Shown here one piece after another: positions 5,401 through 59,200 of a stretch of 64,000 bases of DNA. Numbering within the stretch: the stretch's first letter is position 1; every line of letters begins with the position of its first letter. Source of the DNA: Auanema rhodensis (Eukaryota; Animalia; Nematoda); contig OZ059899.1 in the NCBI GenBank assembly GCA_964057225.1, forward strand, positions 15,314,001-15,378,000. The letters are read 5' to 3'. The position numbers and the translations under genes are program-made. Below the pieces are notes generated by a model. That model saw only the letters and a program-made list of their open reading frames with translations, ran no database searches and was not told the DNA's origin.

Positions 5401-6817
5401 ATATAGCTAACTATAATGCTCAACTATTAATCTATATGATATAGTATATGAAAATACATATTATGTATACGTTTCACTGGGATATATTCCAGATTTAAAT
5501 CATTTTCAATTTGCCATTTGAAGAAAGAAACGTTCTTCATCTTCATCTTATGTAGTTTCCAATATCAGCAGGCCAACTTTAGACAAGTAGCTTTGCCTGA
5601 AAGTTTCCAACCTTGTTCCAACCTTAAAACTTTGTTTGGTGTCTCTCTATCAATTGAGAAAATTCAATCGACAATCACAAAAACTTCATTTTTCATTTCG
5701 CTTTCCACTTCCATAGCTATAACTATTGACCACATGACAACTCTTCCATCCAATATCCAATTTTCAGGATCAAAAAAATAAAATTCTTCTTCCTCAGTCA
5801 TTTATCTGATTTTTAAACTTTTTTTTTTGAAATGATTGAAAAAGAAATGAAATATATCAATCAATATGCTTAATTATGTCATTTTTATTATTATAACTAT
5901 AACTTGTAAATATTATTTTTACATAATTAATAATAATAATAAGTTATATTATACTTTATGTGTGCTGGATTTTGTTTTTTTTTTGTTTTTCAACTACAGG
6001 AGTTCAAACACGACTTACCTCAACATGTTTGTTCTAAGTTTCAGCATCGAAAGTATCAAAGGATTTTGGATAATTCACGTATATCTCCACGTGATAATTT
6101 TTATTTTCACGTCAAAATGACGCATAATGCGGTTGGTTTTCGAAGATCCAGCTGCAACTGTAGGCACAAACACATTTCGCTTTCTCTTCTTCTTCTTCTT
6201 TCGTTTTCTTTTCTTTTGCTTCTTACTGTTTTTCTTATTTTCTCAAAAAAAAGTATAGCGAATTCATTTAGTGTTTTCTGGATATTTTCCTTTAAAATCT
6301 GAGATATTATCTCAGTTACCATATCCGAATTTCAAAATTTCGAATTCATAGACATTTAAAAATAGATGAAAATTGTTCATCTTGATGATGTATTGCTGTC
6401 TATTTAAGGAATTACGTCACATATAATTAAAATGCTCACTTAGCGTATGATTTCTTTCAAGAAGGCTGATGACATTCTCAATAGAGCATAAATTCATCTG
6501 AATGTCCTCTTTATGCTTGTAGTCGGTGTCTACTAGTAGATCTAGCTGTAATCTTGTTTCACACATGCACACGTATCTTTATCACCTCCTCATCGTGCTT
6601 CTCCTACTTTTCTTTATAAAACTATAACTATATTAAATCACCAGCTCATTCACTTTCCTACACATCTATCTATGCATATTATAATTTTTTATTTTTAAGT
6701 AATAACTAATCAATATATGATTTCAGACGGTGCCAATCGGTTAATACACAATATACTCGATGTGACAGCCGAGATTCACGGGTTCTATCAGCAAAAAAAT
6801 CATTTCAAAGCATTTAA
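165..6817 (+). CDS. Class A (rhodopsin-like) neuropeptide-receptor-type GPCR, 5'-partial (TM3 to C-tail)
   Basis: Phase-compatible GT-AG exons: 165-256 (LVVGVSFERVVGVRWPL, TM3/ERY-like motif), 605-734, 814-963 (TM5 IIPLILLIILNVFLL), 1010-1118, 1728-1748 (microexon), 2215-2289 (EHRVAVTVCAVVTSFTITQ, TM6), 2626-2702 (APSA...), 5059-5208 (GKSFNFVVFCLSSSSFRQRL, TM7/helix 8), probable last exon 6727-6817 (RCQSVNTQYTRCDSRDSRVLSAKKSFQSI*). The choice of last exon is less certain. Confidence 0.85.
2443..2475. repeat. (AT)n microsatellite
   Basis: Perfect AT dinucleotide run in a GPCR intron. Confidence 0.9.
3232..3327. mobile_element. 96-bp Tc1/mariner-type MITE
   Basis: Terminal inverted repeats TTAGCTGTGCGCAAAAGTTT / AAACTTTTGCGCATACCTAA (18/20 match, 13-bp perfect core), flanked by TA at 3230-3231 and 3328-3329. 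The TTAGGT...CAAAAGT end resembles mariner TIRs such as Hsmar1/MADE1. Confidence 0.75.
3342..4526 (-). CDS. Serpentine chemoreceptor, Srh family (Str superfamily), nested antisense in a GPCR intron
   Basis: Exons 4526-4317, 4263-3973, 3911-3681, 3630-3549 and 3511 (or 3502)-3342 join in frame to ~325 aa with ~7 hydrophobic segments. Motifs LSNRTKKMQFRLLLNLLVQ (S..T..MQ......L..Q) and C-terminal DGIVSVTCLLFLHKPYK (cf. the Srh HG..ST......HKPYR signature). Intact ATG and TAA. Confidence 0.88.
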
Positions 6818-10733: not shown

Positions 10734-26169
<15,436 letters not shown>

Positions 26170-51000: not shown

Positions 51001-54000
51001 AGATTTGGCTAGGACTTCTCGTGTTTCCGGAAAAACGGTTTATATCGACCCCATCCACAAGATTTGTTCACAAAAAAGTTCAGGCTGTGGACACGTTGTG
51101 TCCTGTGAATGTTCGCTTTGCTCCAAGACCATCATCGAAAATCAAATACAAATACTTTGAGGTGGGGTATTCAGATGTGTAGATTCTGAATCTCCTAGTG
51201 AGATTTGGCTAGGACTTCTCGTGTTTCCGGAAAAACGGTTTATATCGACCCCATCCACAAGATTTGTTCACAAAAAAGTTCAGGCTGTGGACACGTTGTG
51301 TCCTGTGAATGTTCGCTTTGCTCCAAGACCATCATCGAAAATCAAATACAAATACTTTGAGGTGGGGTATTCAGATGTGTAGATTCTGAATCTCCTAGTG
51401 AGATTTGGCTAGGACTTCTCGTGTTTCCGGAAAAACGGTTTATATCGACCCCATCCACAAGATTTGTTCACAAAAAAGTTCAGGCTGTGGACACGTTGTG
51501 TCCTGTGAATGTTCGCTTTGCTCCAAGACCATCATCGAAAATCAAATACAAATACTTTGAGGTGGGGTATTCAGATGTGTAGATTCTGAATCTCCTAGTG
51601 AGATTTGGCTAGGACTTCTCGTGTTTCCGGAAAAACGGTTTATATCGACCCCATCCACAAGATTTGTTCACAAAAAAGTTCAGGCTGTGGACACGTTGTG
51701 TCCGGTGAATGTTCGCTTTGCTCCAAGACCATCATCGAAAATCAAATGAAAACACTTTGAGGTGGGGTATTCAGATGTGTAGATTCTGAATCTCCTAGTG
51801 AGATTTGGCTAGGACTTCTCGTGTTTCCGGAAAAACGGTTTATATCGACCCCATCCACAAGAATTGTTCACAAAAAAGTTCAGGCTGTGGACACGTTGTG
51901 TCCGGTGAATGTTCGCTTTGCTCCAAGACCATCATCGAAAATCAAATGAAAATACTTTGAGGTGGGGTATTCAGATGTGTAGATTCTGAATCTTCTAGTG
52001 AGATTTGGCTAGGACTTCTCGTGTTTCCGCAAAAACGGTTTATATCGACCCCATCCACAAGAATTGTTCACAAAAAAGTTCAGGCTATGGACACGTTGTG
52101 TCCGGTGAATGTTCGCTTTGCTCCTAGACCATCATCGAAAATCAAATAAAAATACTTTGAGGTGGGGTATTCAGATGTGTAGATTCTGAATCTCCTAGTG
52201 CGATTTGGCTAGGACTTCTCGTGTTTCCGGAAAAACGGTTTATATCGACCCCATCCACAAGAATTGCTCACAAAAAAGTTCAGGCTGTGGACACGTTGTG
52301 TCCGGTGAATGTTCGCTTTGCTCCAAGACCATCATCGAAAATTAAATGAAAATACTTTGAGGTGGGGTATTCAGATGTGTAGATTCTGAATCTTCTAGTG
52401 AGATTTGGCTAGGACTTCTCGTGTTTCCGCAAAAACGGTTTATATCGACCCCATCCACAAGAATTGTTCACAAAAAAGTTCAGGCTATGGACACGTTGTG
52501 TCCGGTGAATGTTCGCTTTGCTCCAAGACCATCATCGAAAATTAAATGAAAATACTTTGAGGTGGGGTATTCAGATGTGTAGATTCTGAATCTCCTAGTG
52601 AGATTTGGCTAGGACTTCTCGTGCTTCCGGAAAAACGGTTTATTTCGACCCCATCCACAAGAATTGTTCACAAAAAATTTCAGGCTGTGGACACGTTGTG
52701 TCCGGTGAATGTTCGCTTTGCTCCAAGACCATCATCGAAAATTAAATGAAAATACTTTGAGGTGGGGTATTCAGATGTGTAGATTCTGAATCTCCTAGTG
52801 CGATTTGGCTAGGACTTCTCGTGTTTCCGGAAAAACGGTTTATATCGACCCCATCCACAAGAATTGCTCACAAAAAAGTTCAGGCTGTGGACACGTTGTG
52901 TCCGGTGAATGTTCGCTTTGCTCCAAAACGATCATCGAAAATTAAATGAAAATACTTTGAGGTGGGGTATTCAGATGTGTAGATTCTGAATCTCCTAGTG
53001 AGATTTGGCTAGGACTTCTCGTGCTTCCGGAAAAACGGTTTATTTCGACCCCATCCACAAGAATTGTTCACAAAAAATTTCAGGCTGTGGACACGTTGTG
53101 TCCGGTGAATGTTCGCTTTGCTCCAAGACCATCATCGAAAATTAAATGAAAATACTTTGAGGTGGGGTATTCAGATGTGTAGATTCTGAATCTCCTAGTG
53201 AGATTTGGCTAGGACTTCTCGTGTTTCCGGAAAAACGGTTTATATCGACCCCATCCACAAGAATTGTTCACAAAAAAGTTCAGGCTGTGGACACGTTGTG
53301 TCCTGTGAATGTTCGCTTTGCTCCAAGACCATCATCGAAAATCAAATGAAAATACTTTGAGAATGGGTATTCAGATGTGTAGATTCTGAATCTCCTAATC
53401 AGATTTGGCTAGGACTTCTCGTGTTTCCGGAAAAACGGTTTATATCGACCCCATCCACAAGAATTGTTCACAAAAAAGTTCAGGCTGTGGACACGTTGTG
53501 TCCTGTGAATGTTCGCTTTGCTCCAAGACCATCATCGAAAATCAAATACAAATACTTTGAGGTGGGGTATTCAGATGTGTAGATTCTGAATCTCCTAGTG
53601 AGATTTGGCTAGGACTTCTCGTGTTTCCGGAAAAACGGTTTATATCGACCCCATCCACAAGAATTGTTCACAAAAAAGTTCAGGCTGTGGACACGTTGTG
53701 TCCGGTGAATGTTCGCTTTGCTCCAAGACCATCATCGAAAATCAAATAAAAATACTTTGAGGTGGGGTATTCAGATGTGTAGATTCTGAATCTCCTAGTG
53801 AGATTTGGCTAGGACTTCTCGTGTTTCCGGAAAAACGGTTTATATCGACCCCATCCACAAGAATTGTTCACAAAAAAAGTTCAGGCTGTGGACACGTTGT
53901 GTCCGGTGAATGTTCGCTTTGCTCCAAGACCATCATCGAAAATCAAATAAAAATACTTTGAGGTGGGGTATTCAGATGTGTAGATTCTGAATCTCCTAGT

Positions 54001-55312
54001 GAGATTTGGCTAGGACTTCTCGTGTTTCCGGAAAAACGGTTTATATCGACCCCATCCACAAGAATTGTTCACAAAAAAGTTCAGGCTATGGACACGTTGT
54101 GTCCGGTGAATGTTCGCTTTGCTCCTAGACCATCATCGAAAATCAAATAAAAATACTTTGAGGTGGGGTATTCAGATGTGTAGATTCTGAATCTCCTAGT
54201 GAGATTTGGCTAGGACTTCTCGTGTTTCCGGAAAAACGGTTTATATCGACCCCATCCACAAGAATTGCTCACAAAAAAGTTCAGGCTGTGGACACGTTGT
54301 GTCCGGTGAATGTTCGCTTTGCTCCAAAACGATCATCGAAAATTAAATGAAAATACTTTGAGGTGGGGTATTCAGATGTGTAGATTCTGAATCTCCTAGT
54401 GAGATTTGGCTAGGACTTCTCGTGTTTCCGGAAAAACGGTTTATATCGACCCCATCCACAAGAATTGTTCACAAAAAAGTTCAGGCTATGGACACGTTGT
54501 GTCCGGTGAATGTTCGCTTTGCTCCTAGACCATCATCGAAAATCAAATAAAAATACTTTGAGGTGGGGTATTCAGATGTGTAGATTCTGAATCTCCTAGT
54601 GAGATTTGGCTAGGACTTCTCGTGTTTCCGGAAAAACGGTTTATATCGACCCCATCCACAAGAATTGCTCACAAAAAAGTTCAGGCTGTGGACACGTTGT
54701 GTCCGGTGAATGTTCGCTTTGCTCCAAAACGATCATCGAAAATTAAATGAAAATACTTTGAGGTGGGGTATTCAGATGTGTAGATTCTGAATCTCCTAGT
54801 GAGATTTGGCTAGGACTTCTCGTGCTTCCGGAAAAACGGTTTATTTCGACCCCATCCACAAGAATTGTTCACAAAAAATTTCAGGCTGTGGACACGTTGT
54901 GTCCGGTGAATGTTCGCTTTGCTCCAAGACCATCATCGAAAATTAAATGAAAATACTTTGAGGTGGGGTATTCAGATGTGTAGATTCTGAATCTCCTAAT
55001 CAGATTTGGCTAGGACTTCTCGTGTTTCCGGAAAAACGGTTTATATCGACCCCATCCACAAGATTTGTTCACAAAAAAGTTCAGGCTGTGGACACGTTGT
55101 GTCCGGTGAATGTTCGCTTTGCTCCAAGACCATCATCGAAAATCAAATACAAATACTTTGAGGTGGGGTATTCAGATGTGTAGATTCTGAATCTCCTAGT
55201 GAGATTTGGCTAGGACTTCTCGTGCTTCCGGAAAAACGGTTTATATCGACCCCATCCACAAGATTTGTTCACAAAAAAGTTCAGGCTGTGGACACGTTGT
55301 GTCCTGTGAATG
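27061..55312. repeat. Satellite DNA array, 200-bp monomer, ~141 head-to-tail copies
   Basis: ctccaagacc recurs at 27121, 27321, 27521 and so on. The phase is kept until a single +1 A at ~53872-53878; the last copy starts at 55122 and is cut at 55312. The left edge (27061-27120) is a degenerate partial monomer. Confidence 0.98.
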
Positions 55313-56266: not shown

Positions 56267-59200
56267 CTAAGTTGGAATAACTACTCCATACTGCTCAGCT
56301 TTAGCTTTGCTATATTCCTTGAAACGCCATTGCTGATATTTGTTGTTCGCTTCACATGGCTGCATCAACAAACGAGCTCCTTCTTTTGACATTTCCAAGC
56401 ACTTCTGAGAGACACCGTGAACTAAGCGGCCAGTCTGAATCATACAAGTTCTATGTTTCACAGTCAGATCGTGGATAAACCTCATGGTTATAACGCCATT
56501 CCTGATTACCCTTCATTCCATGACATGGGAAAATCATAACATCTTGACCGGCATAATCCACGCACGATTCATCTCGACGAATTTCTCCGTCCTTGGAGAG
56601 CATCCAGTACTGAAATCATTAGGTAAATCTTCTGAACTTTTGATTCAAAAAGCGCGCGCTAAATCCTGAAACTTGATCGAATTCCAATACTGATGATGAC
56701 ACCGGAAACCAGAAGTAACAAACCTGCATTTCTCAAAAATGTGAACTCAAAATCTCTCAACTAATCAAAAAAATTCAGATTTTGATGTTTTGATCAGTTT
56801 ATAGAACTACTTTTCTCGATTGGCACTCATTCTCGTTTGAACGAACTTATCGCGATCGTGACAAAATACTTTTGGACTTTCAAACCTGATTTCCTCCTTG
56901 ATTATGACAATGGAACATGGTGAATCGCTTCTTATCGCGCTGTTGATAATCAAGACATTGACGATTTCCACCTCCAGCATTTCTTAGCTTAAGTTAAGCG
57001 ATAATATGAACCTCAGATTTTTTTCGATGACTTTTCCCTACTGATTTCAAAAAATGGAGTTGGAAAATCAAAAGGTCTGGTCGAAAATTTGGAAATCAAC
57101 ATGTGTTAGATACAGAAAATTGCCAAAACACAAGAAAGTTAAAACAGAAAGTTAGATCCTTCACCTTAGACAGTCACACTTACAAACATTCTCTTGAGAA
57201 GCACATAGAAAACTCATACAGAGAAGTGTAAACCCAACCCTTCACAGTTCATCATTTCAATTATGTTACTCTAGGTATCCGGTGTATCGTAGAATCCGTT
57301 TTCAACATTTCGTCACGAAGCTCTGAAGTCTACCATCAGTTACTGATGCTAGAGCTATCAGAGCAAGCGTGAGCGAACTTGTTGAAATTCACATCAGTAG
57401 TGGCAGAATCATTGGCGTCCAGCTTCAAACCTGGTTTCCACCCTGCTCATGGCAAAGATAAGGTGATAAAGGCTTGCTCTCAGCTTCTTCTCCAACAGAT
57501 CCATCCATACAGTAAGAAGTAGCATGATTTCGTAACTGAAAGGCGCGCGCAATAACATAAGATAAAGCCTACCTGGTTGCCGCCCTGACCATGACAAGGA
57601 TATAATCCGACAGGCTTGTTCTTTTCATGTCTGTTAACCATGCAATCGAGACAACGGTAATTAGACCCTACTGCACCTTGGTTCCGCACCTCAAACAACG
57701 CGCAAAATATGGTTTTAGTAGATGTGGACATGATCATATTCACAAGGAAAAACATGACATAGGTAGGCTAGTAGCACAAGTATGTGTAATCAACAACAAA
57801 GGGTAAATATGTGACAAGTTAAAATTAGCAAAACAGCTTTCGTGATTAACGAAGGCATTGCGAATTAAAATCGAAAAATCTGTTGAAAAGATAAATTTGC
57901 GAGTGAAAAGATGTTCGTAGTGAATTTCAAAACACAGATACTAATGTGATTATTAAGACAGAGAACTGTAAATAGTCGAAACTATTATAAACATGAAAAT
58001 TAGAGCTTATTATCTATTGTATTACAAAGTTTTTTGTGGATTAAATATTTGTAATGATGTAAATGAAGTGAAATCATACTTGTGCCTCTATATAGTTAGT
58101 ATTAAGCTATTGTCAGTAGTAATGTTCAGTATTAGTATCATGCATTGATTAAGAAAATTGAAAACAGTTAGTTAGTTTGCCACAAAATACATGTTAGAGT
58201 GCTGTTAATATTCTACTATCAAACTATGAGCGCGCGGAACCAAATACGGAGGCTTAGACAAGGATACACCTTTGTCAACTCATATGAGATTTTTTAAACA
58301 AAAAAAGTAAAACATTAGCCAAAAAGAAGTTTGTATGAAAAACTCGTTGTCTCTGTTTTGCCGAATTGAACTCGATATAGGCATGCTAACATGTTAACAG
58401 ACAACGAAACAAGAACCAAGTAACCACGGAAATAGAAACTCAAAATTAAAACAACGACTGAGCAACTACCCAATATATCCCGTTATCATACGTTCAGAAC
58501 GTCAACCAGTATTTTCAAAGACAAATGTGTGGTTTGGAATAAGTTGCTGATGTTTATGCAACACCATAAACTGATTTTGTGCAATTTTGGTGTGGCATGC
58601 AAACAAAAAGTGATTCTGAATTGGCGCATGGTAAAAACGACAGGTTGTGCAAAATATAACAGAGGTTTTACATCAAATTTTGACAAGAAAAAGTTCAAAA
58701 GCGCTCATCATTAACATCAAAATGTCATCACAAAAGTGTTTTTAAAATTTCAAATTTTCATAGGACCAGTCAACTCAAATAAGGGTAAGGGTAAAAGCAA
58801 GGGGAAGGTTTTCCAATAATTTATAATATATACGTACCTCGCCCTTAGCAATAGATTCACCAGGAACAAATAATTCTGGGAAAATGTTGTCTAGATACCA
58901 TTTGAAAGATTTGCAGCCGAGATTCTTACGCAAAGCTTTGCGATCACTAACATCTCCGAAATCTCCCTAAATACAGTTTGAATGATAGGAAATAAAGAAG
59001 AAAAAGCTTACAATAGCATTATTGATTCTTTCGTAATAATATTCTTTGTATTCATCAAGCCATACTTCGGCAAGACGAACGGAATTTCTTTTCAAAACAT
59101 TGACTCCGGTTCTGTAATTTGGAATGTTTCCACATTCTTTTGCCAGAATGCTTTTACCTCCATTTGTATGGCGATCGCTTGCGGAAAACGTGGCCAACAT

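Follow-up and report, generated by a model that had tools for sequence, protein, structure and literature searches.

An inverted copy of an alternative exon in the upstream intron of a nematode gly-5 gene, and its possible part in exon choice

How does a nematode pre-mRNA settle on one exon out of three? The question is raised by a minus-strand gene in the window analysed here, the whole 64,000-nucleotide stretch of Auanema rhodensis DNA. Judging from its exon-by-exon translation and comparison, this gene is the orthologue of gly-5, a polypeptide GalNAc-transferase. The queries in our protein searches were single exons or open reading frames, or else database proteins, and exons were never joined into a spliced protein. 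With single exons and reading frames as queries the nematode GLY-5 orthologues, including GLY-5 of C. elegans, match exon by exon, and the closest named proteins (Auanema sp. JU1783, Necator and C. elegans) are about 71% identical. Three tandem homologous alternative exons lie in the ricin-B lectin domain, here called A, B and C, each of them a multiple of three nucleotides long (Table 1). This is the exon architecture of the C. elegans 9b/9c/9a cluster, for which mutual exclusivity has been demonstrated experimentally (PMC4165533). Exon A is 86% identical to C. elegans 9b across 28 aa and is bounded by the splice sites uuugag/G (acceptor) and CAG/guaggc (donor); the acceptor of exon C, cuuaag/C, is weak. 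A whole-genome search found A and B as the only exon-A-like exons in the species' own genome, and a search for relatives with the exon A reading frame returned only two distant fragments.

Part of the answer is probably spacing. The A-B intron falls below the limit of about 40 nt for steric exclusion between neighbouring alternative exons, and by analogy with C. elegans, where the 34-nt intron between 9b and 9c is reportedly never excised (PMC4165533), it is too short to be removed. Such a block explains why A and B are never joined, not how either of them excludes C. The original prediction, which concerned pairing, left this steric block out. Neither steric hindrance nor NMD, all three exons being 3n, explains everything about a one-of-three choice in nematodes. 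The choice likely matters for glycosylation. The alternative exons alter a loop of the lectin domain, and our argument is by analogy with Drosophila pgant9, in which a comparable loop switches substrate preference (PMC6115407).

The original prediction was that RNA pairing makes the choice. A single element in the upstream intron, 58227-58243, would be a docking site competing for selector-like partners, each alternative exon would have a complementary intronic partner, and self-complementary GC words would cluster around them. The words named for exons A, B and C and for the GC boxes are all there, on the minus strand. The pair claimed for exon A (58243-58227 with 57693-57678) comes to -25.9 kcal/mol and can be extended to 58253-58226 with 57694-57666, at -33.7 or -33.9 kcal/mol. 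In a first shuffle test with narrow windows the A pair was marginal (21/400), and with wider windows it was equalled in 2/300. In tests against the whole cluster, the dinucleotide-shuffled upstream intron equalled the energy of the extended pair in 2 of 300 cases and natural window segments did so in one of 104; when the target was restricted to the A acceptor window, none of 200 shuffles did. RNAduplex run on entire introns returned a meaningless global duplex, and seeded local duplexes were used instead. The best duplexes that the upstream intron forms with exon A are colinear in antisense order. The pairing with exon A is beyond chance, then, and it is larger than had been claimed.

Table 1. 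Features of the gly-5 exon cluster, in window coordinates and in the order of transcription
Feature	Position	Strand	Remarks
Upstream constitutive exon, 3' part	58838-58933	-	donor GT 58837-58836; 87.5% identity to C. elegans exon
Intron upstream of cluster		-	1148 nt; contains anti-A element
Anti-A element	58227-58515	-	within upstream intron; antisense to exon A in the transcript; partner 57693-57559
Anti-A block	58472-58509	-	aligns with 57606-57573
Anti-A block	58381-58420	-	aligns with 57643-57615
Anti-A block	58344-58357	-	aligns with 57657-57644
Anti-A block	58227-58243 (extendable to 58253)	-	aligns with 57693-57678; covers 3' splice site
Exon A	57689-57573	-	117 nt; orthologue of C. 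elegans gly-5 exon 9b
A-B intron	57572-57536	-	37 nt; carries GCGCGCGC at 57543-57550
GCGCGCGC box	57543-57550	-	A-B intron, 8-15 nt before B acceptor
Exon B	57535-57431	-	105 nt; orthologue of C. elegans exon 9c, 66% identity
Hairpin claimed for exon B	57489-57471 x 57369-57350	-	encloses B donor
Helix bracketing exon C	57284-57257 x 56727-56700	-	-28.7 kcal/mol; 3/300 shuffles; in whole-cluster fold
Exon C	56987-56886	-	102 nt; orthologue of C. elegans exon 9a, 62% identity
GCGCGCGC box	56652-56659	-	43-50 nt before constitutive acceptor
Downstream constitutive exon	56609-56481	-	93% identity to C. elegans

Its alignment indicates that the claimed element marks the end that has survived best in a gapped inverted copy of exon A, which we call anti-A. 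When exon A, extended by 15 nt at either end, was aligned by gapped local alignment to the antisense of the upstream intron, the result spanned the exon from UGAG/ to AACCAG with 108 matches and 15 mismatches, in blocks of 81-88% identity separated by insertions of about 100, 23 and 50 nt. The score is 64.0, which shuffles (42.1 +/- 4.5) reached once in 500, and none of 104 natural segments of the window matched it against exon A, the best of them scoring 51.4. In the direct orientation exon A and the upstream intron gave no significant alignment score. The result does not hang on the 16 nt originally claimed: with these masked on both sides the score is still 60.6 against 35.2 +/- 4.2, attained by none of 2000 shuffles (Gumbel p about 2.5e-4), so that exon A with its splice sites has an intronic complement beyond chance. 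Stiff gap costs weaken the score (12/500 shuffles at an extension of -1), as expected because the copy holds large insertions. The four top minus-strand blastn HSPs of anti-A are colinear and individually weak (E 0.07-0.8), so its significance rests on the colinear chain. The mismatches comprise 5 wobble-compatible transitions, 3 other transitions and 7 transversions, with no clear wobble bias in what is an uninformative test. A genome search found the upstream intron to be single copy, and Rfam held no family match for it. We also considered an antisense exon; anti-A has an in-frame stop, and this idea was ruled out because tblastn on the plus strand gave neither a coding signal nor similarity at the protein level.

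Would such a copy find its exon in the pre-mRNA? For 971 nt (58525-57555) RNAfold predicts that anti-A and exon A share 105 bp, in the minimum-energy structure as in the centroid, and 101 bp are retained when the whole cluster of 2256 nt is folded. The duplex is thus predicted to be favoured in its natural context, on the understanding that long-range minimum-energy folds are unreliable and indicative at best. Among the 146 nt of exon A and its flanks (57700-57555), 100 pair with anti-A at P>0.5. Shuffling the anti-A region and refolding left 15 +/- 21 pairs with a maximum of 79, and none of the 40 refoldings equalled the observed 105. The predicted duplex covers the 3' splice site of exon A, its body and its final bases at the donor.

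We compared the window with C. elegans, Pristionchus entomophagus, a nematode locus from a Logan assembly (L001) and insect pgant9-type genes, all of which have alternative lectin-domain exons. L001 has three, with an A-B intron of 26 nt; it matches Aphelenchoides and Panagrolaimus best, at about 70%, and it is distant from the species of the window. A metagenome scan yielded 80 loci, of which the nematode-like ones were a spliced transcript and a contig starting at the downstream exon, and the others that were examined looked non-nematode, so that the scan supplied no nematode genomic locus fit for use. Each alternative exon was aligned to each cluster intron at 8 loci, in both orientations for the nematodes and inverted only for the insects. 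In these roughly 100 tests z exceeded 3 just twice, and both times for exon A against the upstream intron in the inverted orientation: once in the window (z 6.5) and once in L001 (z 4.8). The remaining control tests gave z of 2.9 or less. The copy in L001 (L001 2113-2262) is almost unbroken and sits in the corresponding upstream intron. It scores 61.8 against 37.1 +/- 4.8, attained by none of 1000 shuffles and none of 176 natural segments, and its predicted fold has 103 bp between copy and exon where shuffled versions have 20 +/- 13 (0/100).

The exon A sequences of the window and of L001 share only 50% nucleotide identity, and either copy matches the exon A of its own species alone. The copies are therefore the product of two independent gains or of long co-evolution with the exon. 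L001 also has a helix of -49.6 kcal/mol and about 35 bp that runs from 46 nt past the upstream donor to 24 nt before exon C and overlaps the 5' end of its anti-A copy, which tells us that predicted RNA structure recurs at the gly-5 exon cluster. The exon-against-intron alignments found no anti-A copy in C. elegans (z 2.2), in Pristionchus (z 0.1) or in the four insect loci, so the copy, lacking in two of the nematodes, is not a general nematode feature. Long-range duplexes of up to -41 kcal/mol do occur in C. elegans and Pristionchus, where they are borne by repeats, and they were set aside because other segments of the same loci equal them.

What becomes of the docking scheme? Competing structures with docking and selector elements are known from Dscam1 exon 6, 14-3-3zeta and Mhc (Graveley 2005, Yang 2011), and the original prediction pointed to these insect genes. 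Its general idea of an RNA-pairing layer over the cluster is plausible, but the docking/selector arrangement itself is unsupported, there being no common docking site with a significant selector for each exon. Some observations do speak for it. The CGCGCGC core of the upstream element can also pair with the GC boxes before exon B and before the constitutive exon (-25.2 and -23.7 kcal/mol), a GCGCG stands 10 nt upstream of the A acceptor as well, and such boxes are extremely rare elsewhere. The clustering of GC words is in fact real: three GCGCGCG sites occur in the 64 kb and every one falls in the cluster, the expected number of matches being 0.29, and no shuffle equals the observed count; GCGCGCGC has 2 sites in the window against 0.02 expected and 179 in the 181 Mb genome, many of the latter within a repeated element. 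The alternative pairings, however, consist of a 7-bp core only, and in the whole-cluster fold they are absent (0 pairs). A docking site should find a selector beside every variable exon, and the upstream element is strong with A only (-33.9 kcal/mol) and has no partner at C. Selectors should be intronic and leave the splice sites free, and this partner takes in all of exon A together with the AG of its 3' splice site. What makes the upstream element pair with exon A is its origin as an inverted copy of that exon, and the element has no counterpart in C. elegans or Pristionchus. We believe a docking site is very unlikely on these grounds, and that exon masking together with loop-out helices fits better.

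The pairings proposed around exons B and C fare unevenly. The hairpin in exon B is present at -21.5 kcal/mol, but it is only marginal against chance (16/300 shuffles) and is missing from the minimum-energy fold of the whole cluster. The 7-mers offered for exon C, at -9 to -11.5 kcal/mol, are what chance provides, 156 of 300 shuffles doing as well. Two further helices could loop exons out, each of nominal significance only. One is the helix bracketing exon C in Table 1. The other would join the two GCGCGCGC boxes, which are self-complementary (-19.8 kcal/mol) and whose pairing would enclose exons B and C; this 8-bp helix forms in the 2256-nt fold. The C. elegans locus showed no enrichment of GC boxes in its cluster introns (2/4 of the locus total), and none at the corresponding places.

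Putting these observations together, we propose that a duplex of anti-A with exon A represses or tunes the use of exon A, and that the steric block and the loop-out helices complete the choice; we give this reading a probability of about 0.45. Anti-A would be transcribed some 530-940 nt ahead of exon A and would anneal to it over about 100 bp with interruptions, so that the 3' splice site, the interior of the exon and its terminal bases next to the donor would all be buried. With exon A and its 3' splice site both paired, the effect to be expected is masking, which is repression, unlike the activation brought about by Dscam selectors. Exon A would otherwise be favoured as the first to come, so the duplex would lower or adjust its use. 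A and B would never be joined, by reason of their 37-nt spacing. When A is used, the GCGCGCGC boxes (57543-57550 with 56652-56659) may loop out B and C together, and the helix 57284-57257 with 56727-56700 may loop out C and so favour B. What the analysis establishes is sequence, statistics, predicted folding and recurrence in L001; annealing in vivo and a fall in exon A inclusion are inferred. A bolder version would call anti-A an 'anti-exon', a built-in antisense mask that sets exon choice, kept complementary to the first mutually exclusive exon by compensatory change or gene conversion since before two major nematode lineages parted, or else acquired twice under selection, and accompanied by rare (GC)4 boxes that loop out the other exons. 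We regard this version as unlikely.

The strongest objection to masking is probably that anti-A does nothing. An inverted duplication, for example by a template switch in replication, could be decaying in the intron as a neutral relic with no effect on splicing. This would sit well with its insertions of about 100, 23 and 50 nt, its in-frame stop and the lack of protein-level similarity, with the missing wobble bias and with the absence of a copy from C. elegans and Pristionchus. It is also true that neutral processes alone can leave a complement confined to the exon, only the exon side being constrained. Yet a second, distant nematode repeats the arrangement in exon, intron and orientation alike, and the results for C. 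elegans, Pristionchus and the four insect loci make clear that copies of this kind are uncommon as background. The 81-88% identity of the blocks despite large insertions suggests that the blocks are maintained, and the best-kept block is the one that matches the 3' splice site. As far as the sequences go, a neutral relic accords badly with independent gains and with co-evolution alike, so we regard the relic as an unlikely explanation.

Two other readings seem weaker still. A classical ADAR target is an imperfect intramolecular dsRNA formed by an exon and an intronic complement, and recoding edits are rare in nematodes. The predicted exon-intron dsRNA of about 100 imperfect base pairs does resemble that architecture, so anti-A could be an editing-site complement for recoding exon A, or a Dicer or small-RNA substrate, with any effect on splicing being secondary. 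We find this highly improbable given the rarity of recoding, and a duplex that takes in the acceptor as well as the terminal exon bases beside the donor goes further than editing needs. The last alternative is that there is nothing to explain, and that chance short antisense matches to a G+C-rich exon were strung together by a permissive alignment. The weakness of the individual HSPs, the reliance on cheap gap extension and a composition of exon A that favours its being a duplex target all invite this suspicion. We give it hardly any credence, however, since no shuffle in 2000 and no natural segment in 104 attains the score, the direct-orientation control is flat, the control tests of about 100 reach z of 2.9 at most, the refolding controls stay under the observed count in the window (0/40) and in L001 (0/100), and L001 replicates the finding independently.

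Masking of an exon by pairing is a known type of mechanism. Sequestration of an exon by secondary structure is described for exon 6B of chicken beta-tropomyosin and for the inverted-repeat constructs of Solnick (Cell 1985, cited in PMC4039745). There, and by prediction here, a mutually exclusive exon and its splice sites are paired with the upstream intron, and repression or skipping is the expected outcome. The partner in the window differs in that the entire exon can still be recognised in it in inverted form, and it is predicted to form about 100 bp from 530-940 nt away, and the gly-5 arrangement, known here from sequence, is a nematode one that recurs in a second nematode. With the docking/selector systems, for which an origin by tandem duplication has been modelled (PMC6071210), the window shares long-range pairing of a flanking intron with elements of the variable exons, and the helix of about 35 bp in L001 is docking-like. 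It differs from them in lacking a common docking site with a selector for each exon, in that the exon itself is paired and should be masked, and in having an element that is not conserved across genera. ADAR editing-site complements are alike in that an intronic complement and an exon are predicted to form imperfect dsRNA; the complement in the window differs in lying upstream and in spanning the whole exon with both splice sites.

The loop-out part has its own precedents in human ATE1, with competing and loop-out helices (PMC7797038), and in C. elegans, where reverse-complementary matches promote exon skipping (PMC8330042). In the window too self-complementary intronic boxes bracket sets of exons, and as in ATE1 the GC box after exon A is able to pair either upstream or downstream. 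The cores in the window are unlike those of ATE1 and C. elegans in being 7-8 bp of pure GC and in being predicted from sequence. The short-intron block of C. elegans 9b/9c (34 nt, PMC4165533) has its likeness in the 37 nt of the window and the 26 nt of L001; in Pristionchus the A-B spacing is 155 nt.

The literature we searched held no description of RNA structure at gly-5, as the original prediction had supposed, and no RNA-structure mechanism for a mutually exclusive exon cluster in nematodes; PMC4165533 names none for gly-5. A whole-exon antisense copy in two distant nematodes is a concrete and readily testable hypothesis for exon choice. It also suggests that control of splicing could evolve simply through inverted duplication of an exon, a course different from the origin by tandem duplication that has been proposed for docking/selector systems (PMC6071210).

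One of the words assigned to pairing may have another use. The UUAUCGC upstream of the exon C acceptor belongs to the motif AUCGCUUAAC at 57002-56993, and AUCGC[AU]UAAC is found at the identical offset before exon C in C. elegans. This conservation suggests a branch site or a protein-binding site rather than a pairing element.

A near-perfect helix in the gly-5 locus of a distant nematode (L001) looks like a docking/selector arrangement, in which competing RNA pairings choose one exon as in insect Dscam1. One arm lies in the intron shortly past the upstream donor and the other in the stretch shortly ahead of exon C, and the helix overlaps the 5' end of the inverted copy of exon A in that locus.

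Coordinates of features in and beside gly-5
Feature	Location	Remarks
AUCGC[AU]UAAC motif	window 56993-57002	minus strand; C. elegans counterpart L018:15834-15843
Exon B and C donors	window 57430-57423, 56885-56878	C. elegans L018:14386-14393, 15954-15961
GC-rich palindromic repeat and related copy	L018:13620-13750, 15343-15381	C. elegans; upstream intron, 9c-9a intron
(CCATCC)n-like and (GGATGG)n-like tracts	L019:5864-6226, 6762-6802	Pristionchus entomophagus; upstream intron, A-B intron
Helix	L001:2090-2129 x L001:2817-2854	~35 bp; -49.6 kcal/mol
Tandem satellite	window <=53000-55312	200-bp unit; directly 3' of gly-5

The GC-rich pair of C. elegans could, by its predicted folding, bracket 9b and 9c (the counterparts of exons A and B) at -33 to -37 kcal/mol, and this pairing is no stronger than others within the same locus. 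The two tract types of P. entomophagus flank exon A (-41 kcal/mol), but similar tracts are scattered across the locus. Invertebrate contigs, Lepidoptera-like and Drosophila-like ones among them, carry alternative lectin-domain exons of the gly-5/pgant9 type in tandem; no inverted exon copy occurs in the insect loci (L002-L017), L058 or related metagenome loci.

The AUCGC[AU]UAAC motif stands 6-17 nt upstream of the weak exon C acceptor in A. rhodensis and C. elegans alike, and may be a branch site or a STAR-protein-type element. In both species the shared donor sequence of exons B and C reads GUUUGAA, GUUGGAA or GUUUGGA, whereas that of exon A is different (GUAGGC or GUUAGU).

The satellite unit is repeated at least 11.6 times with 97% identity, and the array accounts for the repeated short ORFs listed for the window.
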